A stretch of 64,000 nucleotides of DNA from Podarcis muralis. Taxonomy: Eukaryota. The translations under genes were made by a program, and so were the position numbers. Where the stretch lies: NCBI RefSeq assembly GCF_964188315.1, contig NC_135666.1, forward strand, positions 37,200,001 to 37,264,000. Reading direction: 5' to 3'. Every line of letters starts with the position of its first letter. Within the stretch, counting starts at the first letter, position 1. The notes beneath the pieces were generated by a model. It was given only the letters and a program-made list of their open reading frames with translations, was not told the DNA's origin and made no database searches. Below, piece after piece: positions 10,701 through 45,333 of this stretch.

Positions 10701-10915
10701 NNNNNNNNNNNNNNNNNNNNNNNNNNNNNNNNNNNNNNNNNNNNNNNNNNNNNNNNNNNNNNNNNNNNNNNNNNNNNNNNNNNNNNNNNNNNNNNNNNNN
10801 NNNNNNNNNNNNNNNNNNNNNNNNNNNNNNNNNNNNNNNNNNNNNNNNNNNNNNNNNNNNNNNNNNNNNNNNNNNNNNNNNNNNNNNNNNNNNNNNNNNN
10901 NNNNNNNNNNNNNNN
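10701..10915. other. Assembly gap (215 N)
   Basis: N run. Confidence 1.
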
Positions 10916-36705: not shown

Positions 36706-37803
36706 CAAGAAAGTGAGGAAGATGCAAGACACCTGCCACCACGAGAACTGCAGTAGTGATTGGACAATTGAGGAAAGACAGGGCAAATGCCCCTGTGAGG
36801 AATGGGTACTAACAGTAATGGAAAATCATGTCCAAAAAACATGGAGTAAATTTGCACGTGATGTTTGACAGCACCAGCCCAAATTGCTTACATTTGGGTA
36901 AATTTTATTCAGTCTTGAAGCTTGTTGAATGTAATGTGGTATATGTAAAATACTGTGTATTTTTTCACATCCACTTCCATAATTGATCAGGGATTTACTT
37001 TAATAAATCTGCCTCCCATTATACCTGGCATTTATTTATTTTTTCACTGTTTCTGAATTAGAGCTAGTTTTGTAAATTGGACCTAATACTCCTCCTGTTA
37101 GGCCAACAGCTGGCATTAACTTTTCAAACTTTGCACAGTCTCTTAAGTGATACATATCATGTCAATAAATAGTTTAATATCTGTCTTACTTGGCAATACT
37201 GGAGGGAAAGGATCAGTGCTCAACCCATATCCTATTGGATAGCATGACTTAATTATGCCTTCTTTTGATATTTTTCAAAGTTCAACCATTCCAAAACAGT
37301 CCCAAAGCTTCATATTACCCAACAGCTCTTTCCTTTCAAACTGTGCATTACTGCCTTGTGGTCAGTGGTGAGAATTCTGGGCTCTGCCTATCTTGAAACT
37401 TTCCCCAAAATAAGTTAAGCATCTCTAATGCAAAGATTAATCTTAATAATTGATACATTCCAACCATTGGGTAGATTTCAAATTTGCAACATTCCCTGTA
37501 TTATTATTGTTGTTGTTGTTGTTGTTGTTGCTGAATTTATATTCTGTCCTATACCCAGGGGTCTGTTTGAGATCTGTTACTGTGTTTCTCATTAACCAAG
37601 TTTTAAAATGAGCTAACATAGCAGCACACCACTTGATAACCTGCTGATGCAAAGTCTACAATAGTTTTCAGTCTGTGTCTTTCCTTATGCACTGAACTTA
37701 TTACAGCTATATTTTCTAGAGAACCAAAATATCTGAAACACATCAGATGGAAGTAATTTTTATTTACCAACTTACCTTCTGATAGCATTCTTTTATTCTA
37801 GAG

Positions 37804-37939
37804 CAGGCATGGCCAAACTTGGCCCTCCAGGTGTTTTGAGACTACAATCCCCATCATCCCTGACCACTGGTCCTGTTAGCTAGGGATGATGGGAGTTGTA
37901 GTCCCAAAACATCTGGAGGGCCAAGTTTGGCCAAGCCTG
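37804..37939. mobile_element. 136-bp palindromic hAT-Charlie MITE with perfect 8-bp TSD TTCTAGAG
   Basis: TIR caggcatggccaaacttggccc / gggccaagtttggccaagcctg. TSD at 37796-803 and 37940-47. Confidence 0.93.
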
Positions 37940-38859
37940 TTCTAGAGCTATACCCCCCACTCCCCATTACATTTACAGTAATAAGTGTTGCAGTTCTCTG
38001 TATTCAAGATCTCTTTAAACTGCAGAAGGAGGACAGCTCATTTCCATGTATTTACATCCCTACAGACCATGTCCTGCCACTTTCTTCTTACAGGGTAAAG
38101 TTCAGCACTAGGTGCCAAAAGGAAGGTTTGAATGAGATTTACATCTGGGTGTCAAGATGCAGAAAAACTTTTCCATAACTGAAAAATCCAGAGAAGAAAT
38201 CATGGCACGATCAGATTCATGCTGCATGCAAATAGAAAAAAAGTCAAGCCAAACCCCACAAGTACCTTTGTTGACAGTTCCTCTCTACAACCCCAGAAAT
38301 CAAACCAAAACACACACTCACATCCTGTGCTTATATGCAGGGATTATGAGATCATAGTATGAGGGAACATACTGATAAAAACAGAGAGTGTGAAGAAAAA
38401 TGGTTAACGCAAGTGACACAGCGAATAAAGTGGGGAGGAATGAGTGACTGCGTTGGTGAGACAAAGCTGTAAGGCACGTCAACGTTTTAATTAAAAAATT
38501 ATGTAGCAGAGATGATGCTAATGAGCCAATAATCTCAAGAGACCATTTCTACAATTCCTGTCTAGTTTCAATGCCCTTATTAGCCCGAAGTGAATAGTTC
38601 TTTTTTTAAACCTAGTAGAAAACAAGCCTACCACACTTCTTTAAATACCACAAGCGTCTGGCATTAATCATGGAAGACCATGTGGAACTGAGGCTGACAC
38701 ACTATGACTCACCTAAGACCAGACAGTTGAGCTTGGTTCAGGTCTGCCATAGCCAAGAACTATCTGCTAGAATCAATTCTTTCCACCAACCCCTTCTGTC
38801 CCTTCAGAGATGTACACGGCATCTCCACTATGCAACCCAGGCTCTCCCCACCCCAATAC

Positions 38860-38982: not shown

Positions 38983-39475
38983 CTGTTCAGAAGAATGCAA
39001 GAGCTATTCAACAGGTACCCACCCAGTGAACACAGCCATAAGGAATGCGAAAGAAAAGCAAAATAATTCTGATGCTTCCATTTTAAATCCAAGGAAATTC
39101 AATGCCCCAGTTCTAGCTTATTAAGAGATGCCTCTGAAATACAGATGTGACTGTTTTTATTTAGCTAGCACCAGCTGAATAAAAACAGACACATCTTTAT
39201 TTCAGTGCAATTTAACTCAGTAGCATGTCCTCAGCTTATTACGATGTATATTTCTTTGGAAGCAAGTCCAACCGAGTCTAGGAGAACTTATACCCAAGTG
39301 CGCAAAGGATTCCTTATTCACACTCACACAGAAAGCTGAAAACAGAAAACGTGTTACACAAAAATGGCCACAATGAAACTCCAAGATCAATAAACAGAAA
39401 ATCTATTAGAAAGCGATAACGATTGGAATTCCAACATGCACTGTAAACAAAGGCTCTTTTCAACAACTGGCTCAC

Positions 39476-39836: not shown

Positions 39837-40008
39837 NNNNNNNNNNNNNNNNNNNNNNNNNNNNNNNNNNNNNNNNNNNNNNNNNNNNNNNNNNNNNNNN
39901 NNNNNNNNNNNNNNNNNNNNNNNNNNNNNNNNNNNNNNNNNNNNNNNNNNNNNNNNNNNNNNNNNNNNNNNNNNNNNNNNNNNNNNNNNNNNNNNNNNNN
40001 NNNNNNNN
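39837..40008. other. Assembly gap (172 N)
   Basis: N run ~190 bp from the PLE cluster. Confidence 1.

Positions 40009-40146: not shown

Positions 40147-40195
<49 letters not shown>
40116..40195. repeat. (AT)n-rich tract, left flank of the PLE cluster
   Basis: Visible TA run. Confidence 0.9.
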
Positions 40196-40197
<2 letters not shown>

Positions 40198-40274
40198 TTT
40201 CGTAGATTTTCACGGGTATAGGTATGCAGGTTTTGGTGTCCTCGGGTGTCTTCCCGTGTAAAAGTTGGGGTGTC

Positions 40275-40317
40275 TAGGCGACGTTTCGACGAGGTCTCAC
40301 TCGTCATCTTCAGGCTG
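40275..40317 (-). ncRNA. Minimal type-I hammerhead ribozyme motif, copy A (sense in SKAP2 pre-mRNA)
   Basis: Minus strand reads CAGC CUGAAGA U GACGAG-UGAGAC-CUCGUC GAAA CGUC GCCUA: core, 6-bp stem II, palindromic ACGU stem III, GUC triplet. Stem I is only 2-3 bp. Confidence 0.7.
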
Positions 40318-40370
40318 GTGCTTTCGGCTTCTTGTTACTGGAACAGAGCAGGATCTCAGTGTTTGAGTTC

Positions 40371-41549
40371 CTATAAATACTGTTGAGGGGTGTGGTGTAT
40401 AGCCTCCAATGTTCTGGGCCGAGAGGAAGTTCCCAGGCTAGTGTGCCTTTTCTTCTTTTGTTCCTTAGTTGCTTGAGGGATATCTTGAGTGATTTCTTGA
40501 GTGATATCCTGAGTACCACTTAGGTGGGTCATTAGGTGTGGATTAGTTGCTAAAGCCTTTGTGTCTTGACCTCTTGAACTTTGTGAAGAGTTTTTCTGAG
40601 AAGATGGCTGTAGTTGTGCTCTGGCTTGGCTTCGTGTATAGGGGCGAGCTGTGGTTTTGTGGCCTGTGCCAGCCAGATCTGTGTAGGGATTGCAGGGGGG
40701 TGCAGCATCCGGAGGTGCCACCATGGTTTGGCTACTGGATGGTGTCTGTAATTTATCTGTGGAGAGGGTCTGGGTTTGGGTCTGGTGTGGTTGATTGGTG
40801 ATGGCGTTCTGTGTGCCTCTGGATCTGGTGTCAGTTTTTGTGGGGAGGGCTAATTTCCAGATGTCTGGCAAGCGGGATGTGTCGTCACGCTTGTTCATGT
40901 TGTGAGGGTGTTTCTCTATCTCGATGGCTTCCATGATTATTCTCTTGTGGTGATGTTCCATGTTAGAGAGCAATTTGGAATCTGCAAAATTAATTTCGTG
41001 TCCTGTTTCTTTCATGTGTTGGAAAAGAGAGGAAGTTTTTTCTTCTTTTTTGACGGCATTCTTGTGTTCTGCGATACGTGCATTTATTCGTCTGTTTGTT
41101 TGTCCAATGTACGTGGCTGGGCAGACTTTGCAGGGTATTTCATAGACCCCTTGGTTTTCCAACTGGATTTTATCCTTGGGGTTTCTGAGGATATTGGCTA
41201 TCTTTTGGTTGGCGCAAAAGGCTGTTTTGATATTGTGTTTATGGAGGATTTTGCTAATTTTATCTGTAGTGCCCTTGATATAAGGAAGGAGGGCCATGCC
41301 ATTGTTTTCTTCTGTGTCTTGGTTTTTGGGGGGTGTTTCTTTTTGGATTAGCTTCGTAACCCTGTTTTGCTGGTATCCATTGGCAATTAACACATTTGAG
41401 AGATTCTGTAACTCAGTTGTCAAGTGGTCTTTGTCAGCCAGGCGTTTGGTTCTGGAGATGAGAGTCTTGGCTACGGAGTTTATTTGTGCAGGGTGGTGGT
41501 GTGATTGTGCATGTAAGTAGCGGTTGGTGTGTGTTTTTTTCCGGTAGAT
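40371..41549 (-). CDS. Partial PLE polyprotein (RT C-terminus, GIY-YIG endonuclease, 157-aa low-complexity tail); 5'-truncated, no genuine start
   Basis: Uninterrupted 392 codons; the 350-aa ORF in the track starts at an internal TTG. Confidence 0.85.
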   Translation of the reverse strand: MYRKKTHTNRYLHAQSHHHPAQINSVAKTLISRTKRLADKDHLTTELQNLSNVLIANGYQQNRVTKLIQKETPPKNQDTEENNGMALLPYIKGTTDKISKILHKHNIKTAFCANQKIANILRNPKDKIQLENQGVYEIPCKVCPATYIGQTNRRINARIAEHKNAVKKEEKTSSLFQHMKETGHEINFADSKLLSNMEHHHKRIIMEAIEIEKHPHNMNKRDDTSRLPDIWKLALPTKTDTRSRGTQNAITNQPHQTQTQTLSTDKLQTPSSSQTMVAPPDAAPPCNPYTDLAGTGHKTTARPYTRSQARAQLQPSSQKNSSQSSRGQDTKALATNPHLMTHLSGTQDITQEITQDIPQATKEQKKKRHTSLGTSSRPRTLEAIHHTPQQYL

Positions 41550-42735
41550 AGCAAAACAGGGTTACGAAGCTAATCCAAAAAATACCAGCAAAACAGGGTT
41601 ACGAAGCTAATCCAAAAAGAAACACCCCCCAAAAACCAAGACACAGAAGAAAACAATGGCATGGCCCTCCTTCCTTATATCAAGGGCACTACAGATAAAA
41701 TTAGCAAAATCCTCCATAAACACAATATCAAAACAGCCTTTTGCGCCAACCAAAAGATAGCCAATATCCTCAGAAACCCCAAGGATAAAATCCAGTTGGA
41801 AAACCAAGGGGTCTATGAAATACCCTGCAAAGTCTGCCCAGCCACGTACATTGGACAAACAAACAGACGAATAAATGCACGTATCGCAGAACACAAGAAT
41901 GCCGTCAAAAAAGAAGAAAAAACTTCCTCTCTTTTCCAACACATGAAAGAAACAGGACACGAAATTAATTTTGCAGATTCCAAATTGCTCTCTAACATGG
42001 AACATCACCACAAGAGAATAATCATGGAAGCCATCGAGATAGAGAAACACCCTCACAACATGAACAAGCGTGACGACACATCCCGCTTGCCAGACATCTG
42101 GAAATTAGCCCTCCCCACAAAAACTGACACCAGATCCAGAGGCACACAGAACGCCATCACCAATCAACCACACCAGACCCAAACCCAGACCCTCTCCACA
42201 GATAAATTACAGACACCATCCAGTAGCCAAACCATGATGGCACCTCCGGATGCTGCACCCCCCTGCAATCCCTACACAGATCTGGCTGGCACAGGCCACA
42301 AAACCACAGCTCGCCCCTATACACGAAGCCAAGCCAGAGCACAACTACAGCCATCTTCTCAGAAAAACTCTTCACAAAGTTCAAGAGGTCAAGACACAAA
42401 GGCTTTAGCAACTAATCCACACCTAATGACCCACCTAAGTGGTACTCAGGATATCACTCAAGAAATCACTCAAGATATCCCTCAAGCAACTAAGGAACAA
42501 AAGAAGAAAAGGCACACTAGCCTGGGAACTTCCTCTCGGCCCAGAACATTGGAGGCTATACACCACACCCCTCAACAGTATTTATAGGAACTCAAACACT
42601 GAGATCCTGCTCTGTTCCAGTAACAAGAAGCCGAAAGCACCAGCCTGAAGATGACGAGTGAGACCTCGTCGAAACGTCGCCTAGACACCCCAACTTTTAC
42701 ACGGGAAGACACCCGAGGACACCAAAACCTGCATA
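41550..42735 (+). mobile_element. Penelope-like element copy B (inverted relative to A; 32-bp 5' stutter; lacks last ~27 bp)
   Basis: 41582-42735 is the reverse complement of 40223-41376 (one mismatch, at 40721). ORF 41661..42587. Confidence 0.95.
42641..42683 (+). ncRNA. Minimal hammerhead ribozyme motif, copy B
   Basis: CTGAAGA 42645-51, stem II 42653-70, GAAA 42671-74, predicted cleavage after C42678. Confidence 0.7.
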
Positions 42736-42752
42736 TATATATATATATATAT

Positions 42753-43967
42753 TTGCTTTCGTAGATTTTCACGGGTATAGGTATGCAGGTTTTGGTGTCC
42801 TCGGGTGTCTTCCCGTGTAAAAGTTGGGGTGTCTAGGCGACGTTTCGACGAGGTCTCACTCGTCATCTTCAGGCTGGTGCTTTCGGCTTCTTGTTACTGG
42901 AACAGAGCAGGATCTCAGTGTTTGAGTTCCTATAAATACTGTTGAGGGGTGTGGTGTATAGCCTCCAATGTTCTGGGCCGAGAGGAAGTTCCCAGGCTAG
43001 TGTGCCTTTTCTTCTTTTGTTCCTTAGTTGCTTGAGGGATATCTTGAGTGATTTCTTGAGTGATATCCTGAGTACCACTTAGGTGGGTCATTAGGTGTGG
43101 ATTAGTTGCTAAAGCCTTTGTGTCTTGACCTCTTGAACTTTGTGAAGAGTTTTTCTGAGAAGATGGCTGTAGTTGTGCTCTGGCTTGGCTTCGTGTATAG
43201 GGGCGAGCTGTGGTTTTGTGGCCTGTGCCAGCCAGATCTGTGTAGGGATTGCAGGGGGGTGCAGCATCCGGAGGTGCCATCATGGTTTGGCTACTGGATG
43301 GTGTCTGTAATTTATCTGTGGAGAGGGTCTGGGTTTGGGTCTGGTGTGGTTGATTGGTGATGGCGTTCTGTGTGCCTCTGGATCTGGTGTCAGTTTTTGT
43401 GGGGAGGGCTAATTTCCAGATGTCTGGCAAGCGGGATGTGTCGTCACGCTTGTTCATGTTGTGAGGGTGTTTCTCTATCTCGATGGCTTCCATGATTATT
43501 CTCTTGTGGTGATGTTCCATGTTAGAGAGCAATTTGGAATCTGCAAAATTAATTTCGTGTCCTGTTTCTTTCATGTGTTGGAAAAGAGAGGAAGTTTTTT
43601 CTTCTTTTTTGACGGCATTCTTGTGTTCTGCGATACGTGCATTTATTCGTCTGTTTGTTTGTCCAATGTACGTGGCTGGGCAGACTTTGCAGGGTATTTC
43701 ATAGACCCCTTGGTTTTCCAACTGGATTTTATCCTTGGGGTTTCTGAGGATATTGGCTATCTTTTGGTTGGCGCAAAAGGCTGTTTTGATATTGTGTTTA
43801 TGGAGGATTTTGCTAATTTTATCTGTAGTGCCCTTGATATAAGGAAGGAGGGCCATGCCATTGTTTTCTTCTGTGTCTTGGTTTTTGGGGGGTGTTTCTT
43901 TTTGGATTAGCTTCGTAACCCTGTTTTGCTGGTATTTTTTGGATTAGCTTCGTAACCCTGTTTTGCT
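42753..43967 (-). mobile_element. Penelope-like element copy C (complete 3' end; short 5' end with 32-bp stutter)
   Basis: Direct repeat of copy A at offset 2559 up to 43935, followed by the flipped spacer. ORF 42930..43856. Confidence 0.95.
42834..42876 (-). ncRNA. Minimal hammerhead ribozyme motif, copy C (sense in SKAP2 pre-mRNA)
   Basis: Identical to copy A at +2559. Confidence 0.7.
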
Positions 43968-45146
43968 ATCTACCGGAAAAAAACACACACCAACCGCTAC
44001 TTACATGCACAATCACACCACCACCCTGCACAAATAAACTCCGTAGCCAAGACTCTCATCTCCAGAACCAAACGCCTGGCTGACAAAGACCACTTGACAA
44101 CTGAGTTACAGAATCTCTCAAATGTGTTAATTGCCAATGGATACCAGCAAAACAGGGTTACGAAGCTAATCCAAAAAGAAACACCCCCCAAAAACCAAGA
44201 CACAGAAGAAAACAATGGCATGGCCCTCCTTCCTTATATCAAGGGCACTACAGATAAAATTAGCAAAATCCTCCATAAACACAATATCAAAACAGCCTTT
44301 TGCGCCAACCAAAAGATAGCCAATATCCTCAGAAACCCCAAGGATAAAATCCAGTTGGAAAACCAAGGGGTCTATGAAATACCCTGCAAAGTCTGCCCAG
44401 CCACGTACATTGGACAAACAAACAGACGAATAAATGCACGTATCGCAGAACACAAGAATGCCGTCAAAAAAGAAGAAAAAACTTCCTCTCTTTTCCAACA
44501 CATGAAAGAAACAGGACACGAAATTAATTTTGCAGATTCCAAATTGCTCTCTAACATGGAACATCACCACAAGAGAATAATCATGGAAGCCATCGAGATA
44601 GAGAAACACCCTCACAACATGAACAAGCGTGACGACACATCCCGCTTGCCAGACATCTGGAAATTAGCCCTCCCCACAAAAACTGACACCAGATCCAGAG
44701 GCACACAGAACGCCATCACCAATCAACCACACCAGACCCAAACCCAGACCCTCTCCACAGATAAATTACAGACACCATCCAGTAGCCAAACCATGATGGC
44801 ACCTCCGGATGCTGCACCCCCCTGCAATCCCTACACAGATCTGGCTGGCACAGGCCACAAAACCACAGCTCGCCCCTATACACGAAGCCAAGCCAGAGCA
44901 CAACTACAGCCATCTTCTCAGAAAAACTCTTCACAAAGTTCAAGAGGTCAAGACACAAAGGCTTTAGCAACTAATCCACACCTAATGACCCACCTAAGTG
45001 GTACTCAGGATATCACTCAAGAAATCACTCAAGATATCCCTCAAGCAACTAAGGAACAAAAGAAGAAAAGGCACACTAGCCTGGGAACTTCCTCTCGGCC
45101 CAGAACATTGGAGGCTATACACCACACCCCTCAACAGTATTTATAG
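43968..45146 (+). CDS. Partial PLE polyprotein, copy D (differs from A at one codon, V/M)
   Basis: Uninterrupted 392 codons, IYRKKTHTNRYL...PQQYL*. Confidence 0.85.
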   Translation: MYRKKTHTNRYLHAQSHHHPAQINSVAKTLISRTKRLADKDHLTTELQNLSNVLIANGYQQNRVTKLIQKETPPKNQDTEENNGMALLPYIKGTTDKISKILHKHNIKTAFCANQKIANILRNPKDKIQLENQGVYEIPCKVCPATYIGQTNRRINARIAEHKNAVKKEEKTSSLFQHMKETGHEINFADSKLLSNMEHHHKRIIMEAIEIEKHPHNMNKRDDTSRLPDIWKLALPTKTDTRSRGTQNAITNQPHQTQTQTLSTDKLQTPSSSQTMMAPPDAAPPCNPYTDLAGTGHKTTARPYTRSQARAQLQPSSQKNSSQSSRGQDTKALATNPHLMTHLSGTQDITQEITQDIPQATKEQKKKRHTSLGTSSRPRTLEAIHHTPQQYL

Positions 45147-45199
45147 GAACTCAAACACTGAGATCCTGCTCTGTTCCAGTAACAAGAAGCCGAAAGCAC

Positions 45200-45242
45200 C
45201 AGCCTGAAGATGACGAGTGAGACCTCGTCGAAACGTCGCCTA
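45200..45242 (+). ncRNA. Minimal hammerhead ribozyme motif, copy D
   Basis: Identical to copy B at +2559. Confidence 0.7.
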
Positions 45243-45291
45243 GACACCCCAACTTTTACACGGGAAGACACCCGAGGACACCAAAACCTGC

Positions 45292-45333
<42 letters not shown>
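45292..45333. repeat. (AT)n(AC)n microsatellite, right flank of the PLE cluster
   Basis: Visible run. Confidence 0.9.

Follow-up and report, generated by a model that had tools for sequence, protein, structure and literature searches.

Insertions of Penelope-like elements (PLEs) are, according to excerpts of two published accounts, heavily 5'-truncated, often with an inverted truncated copy beside the direct one, and they carry a tail of 30-40 bp that in many cases marks just one of the two ends (PMC8557442; PMC3846280). Their preferred targets are AT-rich or (TA)n sequences, as described in excerpts of PMC8557442 and PMC11167929, and tandem and inverted PLE structures are named in the former as a known cause of assembly problems. 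For PAc, the PLE of Anolis carolinensis, the available excerpts of PMC11167929 report that the protein cuts and extends both target strands in vitro, that reverse transcription has two internal start sites, the outer of which lies 111-118 nt into the open reading frame (ORF) while the tail is the stretch between the two, and that this ORF starts inside a hammerhead motif. The present analysis concerns a 5-kb structure in Podarcis muralis (contig NC_135666.1, positions 37,200,001 to 37,264,000; this stretch of 64,000 nucleotides is called the window, and all positions are counted from its first letter), in which two tandem units, each a pair of inverted arms around a short spacer, differ almost solely in the orientation of that spacer. 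Judged from their sequence, all four arms derive from the 3' end of a single Poseidon-type PLE, each being truncated on its 5' side. Known processes account for the structure, of which it is a well-preserved specimen; it does not represent a new element able to invert or replicate itself.

Large palindromes, such as P6 of the human Y chromosome (PMC3723533) and those of the primate X chromosome (PMC8327919), offer a second point of comparison. In these, a crossover between the arms within one chromatid inverts the spacer, and gene conversion between the arms is much more frequent (PMC3723533). The Podarcis locus resembles them in its near-identical inverted arms and unique spacer, in that exchange between arms would invert the spacer, and in that gene conversion can maintain arm identity. 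Unlike those palindromes, whose arms are tens of kilobases long and bear genes, its arms consist of 1.15 kb of transposon, and its two spacer orientations stand side by side in one assembly, whereas in the Y and X palindromes they differ between individuals or species. A third point of comparison is the false heterotype duplication, in which the two copies are typically separated by a gap (PMC9516828) and which is also recognized by half read depth and haplotype-specific k-mers. Here, too, adjacent near-identical copies show allele-like differences; unlike in such duplications, no gap is present, and a locus with one unit could not have supplied the sequence that joins the two.

Identity of the arms

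The arms contain the end of a reverse transcriptase, a nuclease of the GIY-YIG type, a motif resembling a hammerhead and the beginning of the ORF that follows. Only the last 1.3 kb of the PLE is present at the locus. The most informative frame, 43968-45146, encodes a product of 392 residues in which the C-terminal region of the reverse transcriptase is followed by the GIY-YIG domain, with its core at about 44367-44486. The domain matches Pfam PF01541 (E = 2.8e-4, 21.5 bits), slightly below the cut-off of 22.6. Nuclease residues are recognizable in the translation as GVYEIPCKVCPATYIGQT, then AEH...FQH, with two cysteines within the core and a His-His pair after it; this Cys/His criterion for the PLE nuclease is drawn from excerpts of PMC8557442. 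A word-based protein search returned 83 relatives, many of them combining the reverse transcriptase (PF00078), PF26215 and GIY-YIG (PF01541), and the best named relatives are squamates, both snakes and lizards (E = 1e-89 to 1e-91). The GIY-YIG domain with its Cys/His pattern, together with homologues that carry the reverse transcriptase, PF26215 and GIY-YIG, thus identifies the arms as the C-terminal part of a PLE. In arm 1, the frame 40371-41423 encodes 350 residues and has a valine at base 40721, where the other three arms have a methionine. An exact look-up of five ORF products (two crossing the central junction and one crossing the right junction) found none of them in the protein collection.

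Compared with PAc and other PLEs, as far as the excerpts cited above describe them, the locus shares a GIY-YIG domain that follows the reverse transcriptase, a direct copy accompanied by an inverted one with a truncated 5' end, a short tail confined to one end, and an AT-rich or (TA)n target, represented here by (AT)21, (AT)10 and (AT)10(AC)11. It departs from the PLE norm given in those excerpts in a tail of 27 nt as against 30-40, in the lack of a direct partial tandem arrangement (pLTR), and in a putative hammerhead that Rfam does not recognize. Repeat finding and blastn revealed no pLTR, the sole direct repetition being that of the whole fold-back unit; a missing pLTR is expected for truncated insertions and is compatible with PLE membership. 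Penelope/Poseidon membership holds on every feature testable in the fragment, save the putative hammerhead and the absent direct pLTR. The duplicated fold-back unit with an inverted spacer is an arrangement not described for PLEs in the excerpts of PMC11167929, PMC8557442 and PMC3846280.

The initial annotation had described an exact tandem period with an inverted core and had not recognized the arms as PLE ends. Once they are so identified, the pairing of inverted copies, their truncation, the 27-bp terminus on one side and the flanking (AT)n all become ordinary insertion features, and what looked like an exotic flip-flop replicon or switch resolves into a retrotransposon insertion with textbook Penelope traits.

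Organization of the two units

The units, 40174-42732 and 42733-45291, were compared at a shift of 2559 by repeat finding and by direct script comparison. Direct sequence comparison gives 2402 identities in 2559 positions. The spacer 41377-41581 accounts for 155 of the 157 mismatches, and outside it only the bases 40194 and 40721 differ. The spacer of the second unit, 43936-44140, is the exact reverse complement of the first (205/205). An exact search of the 64 kb for the 27-nt terminus gave two hits, at 40196 and 42755, each on the + strand (none in 100 shuffles); the plus copies lack it where they end on the outside, at 42732 and 45291. These results bear out three claims made in the initial annotation, namely that every landmark recurs at +2559, that the spacer is inverted in the second unit, and that the terminus belongs to the minus copies only. 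The inverted arms measure 1154 bp and are 99.9-100% complementary, with one differing base in unit 1 and none in unit 2. As a whole, 40217-45300 forms a 2525-nt palindrome (2520/2525) around the asymmetric centre (AT)10-TT-tail. Such regularity is far above chance.

Within each unit, a minus and a plus copy lie head to head with their 3' ends outward, as repeat finding and blastn both indicate. Unit 1 is entered from the left through an (AT)21 microsatellite, read directly from the sequence (40154-40195), which forms the left part of the insertion target and is followed by the 27-nt PLE tail at the outer (3') end of the minus copy (40196-40222, minus strand, located by exact match search). The long 5'-truncated copy of this unit, comprising arm 1 and most of the spacer, occupies 40223-41549 on the minus strand (blastn, 99.92% over 1314 nt). 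Its spacer, here called flip (41377-41581), consists of the extra 173 nt of the long minus copy and a 32-nt re-copied segment on the plus strand (41550-41581), which lies at the head-to-head junction and which an exact-match search identified as a duplicate of 41587-41618. Arm 2, the short 5'-truncated copy, follows on the plus strand without a tail (41582-42732; blastn, 100% to long-copy positions 174-1314).

The central junction (42733-42754), likewise read directly, consists of (AT)10 and then TT, and no N separates the two units. One base sets this junction apart from the left one, T at 42753 versus A at 40194. Unit 2 then begins with its own 27-nt tail (42755-42781, minus strand, exact match search), which belongs to the short 5'-truncated copy, or arm 3 (42782-43935, minus strand), delimited by direct comparison and blastn. 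The spacer in its flop orientation (43936-44140) includes the mirrored 32-nt re-copy at 43936-43967, as found by direct comparison and exact-match search. The long 5'-truncated copy of unit 2, comprising arm 4 and the spacer, extends over 43968-45291 on the plus strand and is supported by the open frame described above, by Pfam and by homologues. The right part of the target microsatellite, again read directly (45292-45333), consists of (AT)10 at 45292-45311 and (AC)11 at 45312-45333.

No further copies of the PLE family were found by blastn elsewhere in the 64-kb window. The nearest run of N, a block of 172 at 39837-40008, stops 188 bp short of the structure on its left side. Two more such blocks, at 10701-10915 and 18535-18738, have a similar, exon-like size.

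The element family in sequencing reads

The read set comprised Illumina runs and Logan contigs. Four runs were placed on 41377-42880, a stretch that does not repeat itself, with 42725-42763 left out as a repeat that includes (AT)10. From about 5% of one Illumina raw-read run, the summed depth of the PLE family reached about 1100-2200, which swamps the signal of the single locus. For a lacertid genome assumed to be about 1.5 Gb in size, this corresponds very roughly to a copy number on the order of one thousand. Contigs from another, related organism (run X13) contain the family as well.

Tailed copies are common in this family, with a depth of about 1000 at 42778, and in 345 family reads tail-less ends run into (TA)n. 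The inner junction behaves differently: depth drops from about 1150 to 418 in the bin that holds it, and 785 reads continue as normal upstream element sequence, which marks this junction as low-copy and not a feature of the family. The copies at the locus differ from the family majority at about ten near-private positions, and these differences are common to all four arms. The only base that tells the four arms apart is 40721 (equivalents 42237, 43280 and 44796), at which arm 1 agrees with the majority of the family (Val); the remaining three have in common a state found in about 6% of family reads (Met). Short reads cannot separate flip from flop, as the two isomers have all k-mers below arm length in common.

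Origin of the tandem isomers

We favour, with a probability of roughly 0.6, a history in which one fold-back PLE insertion was duplicated in tandem through (AT)n and one of the two spacers was inverted by a crossover between arms. A Poseidon-type PLE would have inserted once into an (AT)n(AC)n microsatellite, where both target strands would have been cut, each then priming reverse transcription, as occurs in vitro for the Anolis element. The product would be two 5'-truncated copies placed head to head with their 3' ends outward. The minus copy, if started at the outer site, would keep the 27-nt tail, and the plus copy, if started at the inner site, would be tail-less. Joining of the complementary DNAs (cDNAs) at an accidental point, with the 32-nt re-copy, would leave inverted arms of 1154 bp with the 205-bp spacer between them. 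A tandem duplication of the entire unit may have followed at the DNA level, by slippage or misaligned exchange at the (AT) runs on either side, and one unit may have had its spacer turned by a crossover between its inverted arms. The base at 40721 fits a duplication combined with arm-to-arm exchange only loosely and calls for a conversion tract or different parental alleles. A variant of this course is a single unequal exchange, misaligned on the (AT) runs, that joined a flip allele to a flop allele; this one step would account for the entire structure, the two single-base differences included.

Several observations support a single insertion followed by exchange. The two truncation points and the 32-nt re-copy recur in both units, mirrored relative to the tail, and this mirrored common inner junction is the accident of a single joining event, so the units are very unlikely to be independent insertions. 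The low copy number of that junction in reads, the near-private differences common to all four arms and the documented inversion of palindromes by crossover within a chromatid (PMC3723533) also speak for this history. In addition, an arm-to-arm exchange is required by strand logic. With A for arm, S for spacer and a prime for the reverse complement, a continuous cDNA of unit 1 never yields the tail-A-S'-A' of unit 2; the origin of unit 2 as one continuous cDNA of either unit 1 transcript was rejected, as it gives only tail-A-S-A' or the reverse complement of it.

Several points weigh against this history. It needs two rare events, a duplication and an inversion, or else a population that carries both isomers. 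The state at 40721 demands an extra gene conversion, and TT at the central junction, against AT at the left one, one more mutation. Finally, the central junction and the two spacer orientations come from the assembly, a point that also counts for an artefact.

The four near-identical arms form a small natural test case for arm-to-arm exchange in palindromes born of transposons.

Alternative explanations

The initial annotation had left a choice between an invertible segment with both isomers in tandem and two isomers falsely joined. Both are still live, and of the two the real structure is favoured by the lack of a gap and by a junction that a single unit could not supply. Taking the duplication-plus-crossover and element-mediated routes together, the structure is probably real. 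In the opposite case, the genome would hold a single unit, perhaps as flip and flop alleles, and the assembler would have stacked both or looped twice, an outcome that we regard as unlikely though of some weight. Several facts are in keeping with it: the units differ only by spacer orientation and the bases 40194 and 40721, as two alleles would; a family of about a thousand copies could inflate coverage-based copy estimates; excerpts of PMC8557442 report that tandem and inverted PLE structures upset assemblies; and heterozygous regions are the main source of false duplications (PMC9516828). Against these stands the junction itself. The sequence is continuous across 42733-42781, with no gap between the units, and since the right and left unit ends have only (AT)n in common, the string A'-(AT)10-TT-tail needs reads that contain it; neither long-read overlaps nor k-mers above 20 nt could have made it otherwise. 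The arms, moreover, keep their near-private variants in place of the family consensus, which points to an assembly built from locus-specific long reads. A simpler artefact, a single fold-back or missed-adapter read, was rejected: it would place the reverse-complemented tail at the far right, where none is seen, and on this geometry and strand logic we agree with the earlier argument that a single fold-back cannot put the terminus in the centre. The locus also calls for caution in annotation and assembly checks in PLE-rich genomes.

Much less probable is that the PLE machinery itself made unit 2. A fold-back transcript of unit 1 would have been reverse-transcribed from nicks on both strands beside unit 1, after which the two quasi-palindromic cDNAs would pair arm to arm and the unpaired spacer bubble would be resolved as flop. 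Such a route could make use of the PLE 3' region in which both strands of unit 1 end, and of the centre, where ...ATATTT followed by the tail holds the ATT motif preferred by the Anolis enzyme; unit 2 also has (AT)10 on both sides, resembling a target duplication. The scheme is wholly conjectural, no event of this kind having been described, and it asks a perfect 1.15-kb hairpin RNA, a poor template, to be copied. It also takes more steps than a DNA-level duplication and crossover, and the low copy number of the fold-back junction in reads indicates that the unit is not a mobile family. If true, it would be a new way for PLEs to build their puzzling tandem and inverted arrays, and flip and flop loops would be predicted wherever fold-back copies are re-mobilized.

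That one PLE subfamily inserted twice, independently and at adjacent sites of the microsatellite, is very improbable. PLEs do stack in (TA)n tracts, as excerpts of PMC8557442 state, and each unit alone shows a complete insertion grammar, but the same truncation points and the mirrored 32-nt re-copy are accidents unlikely to repeat, and this explanation is close to refuted.

The least credible possibility, a programmed invertible switch or a parvovirus-like rolling-hairpin replicon with flip and flop ends, shares with the locus only the formal arrangement of inverted repeats around a segment seen in both orientations, while the ORF list holds only PLE-derived and antisense frames, with no recombinase, Rep or nickase besides the truncated PLE nuclease, the arms and spacer are ordinary PLE coding sequence, and the structure sits in a host chromosome between microsatellite flanks. 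Rolling-hairpin replication and plastid or herpesvirus isomerization, which the initial annotation had brought in as analogies, are not supported as mechanisms here, there being no replication or recombinase gene, no specific recombination or resolution site and no evidence of ongoing flipping; the sole parallel to the plastid and herpesvirus isomers is the general one that homologous exchange between inverted repeats inverts the intervening DNA.

Hammerhead-like motif, tail and next open reading frame

Towards the 3' end of the element, a hammerhead-like core lies at 45203-45240 on the plus strand, with CUGAAGA, a predicted 6-bp stem, GAAAC, GUC and a self-complementary ACGU. The same motif is found in all four arms, the other three instances lying at about 42644-42681 (plus strand), 40277-40314 (minus strand) and 42836-42873 (minus strand). 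An extra U precedes stem II, and Rfam returned no hammerhead match, either over 7.5 kb (E up to 1) or over 341 nt (E up to 10). An ATG at 45210, inside the core, opens a frame of 37 codons that stays open through the tail. In sense orientation, the 27-nt tail continues this frame: copies with the tail reach nt 112 of the next ORF, and those lacking it stop at nt 82-85. A start codon within a putative hammerhead is a likeness to PAc as described in excerpts of PMC11167929, and the tail end at nt 112 compares with 111-118 there. The tail boundary thus falls within the nucleotide range of the start sites that in-vitro work gave for the Anolis element, and with it the result now covers a second family of squamates.

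At 42648-42869, Rfam reported many matches to microRNA precursors, for example MIR7723 (E = 5e-22, 107 bits against a gathering score of 200). They do not point to a microRNA gene: the matches reflect the palindrome centre folding as a long hairpin, and all are below their gathering scores.

Other fold-back sequences in the window

Two smaller features lie to the left of the structure. One, at 39129-39209, is a short imperfect palindrome with weak matches to Rfam microRNA families, all far under the gathering scores. The other, at 37797-37946, is a 150-nt hairpin with 65-nt arms that are 91% complementary, a 20-nt loop and the motif GGGAGTTGTAGTCC, and it resembles a small fold-back repeat of the miniature inverted-repeat transposable element (MITE) kind.

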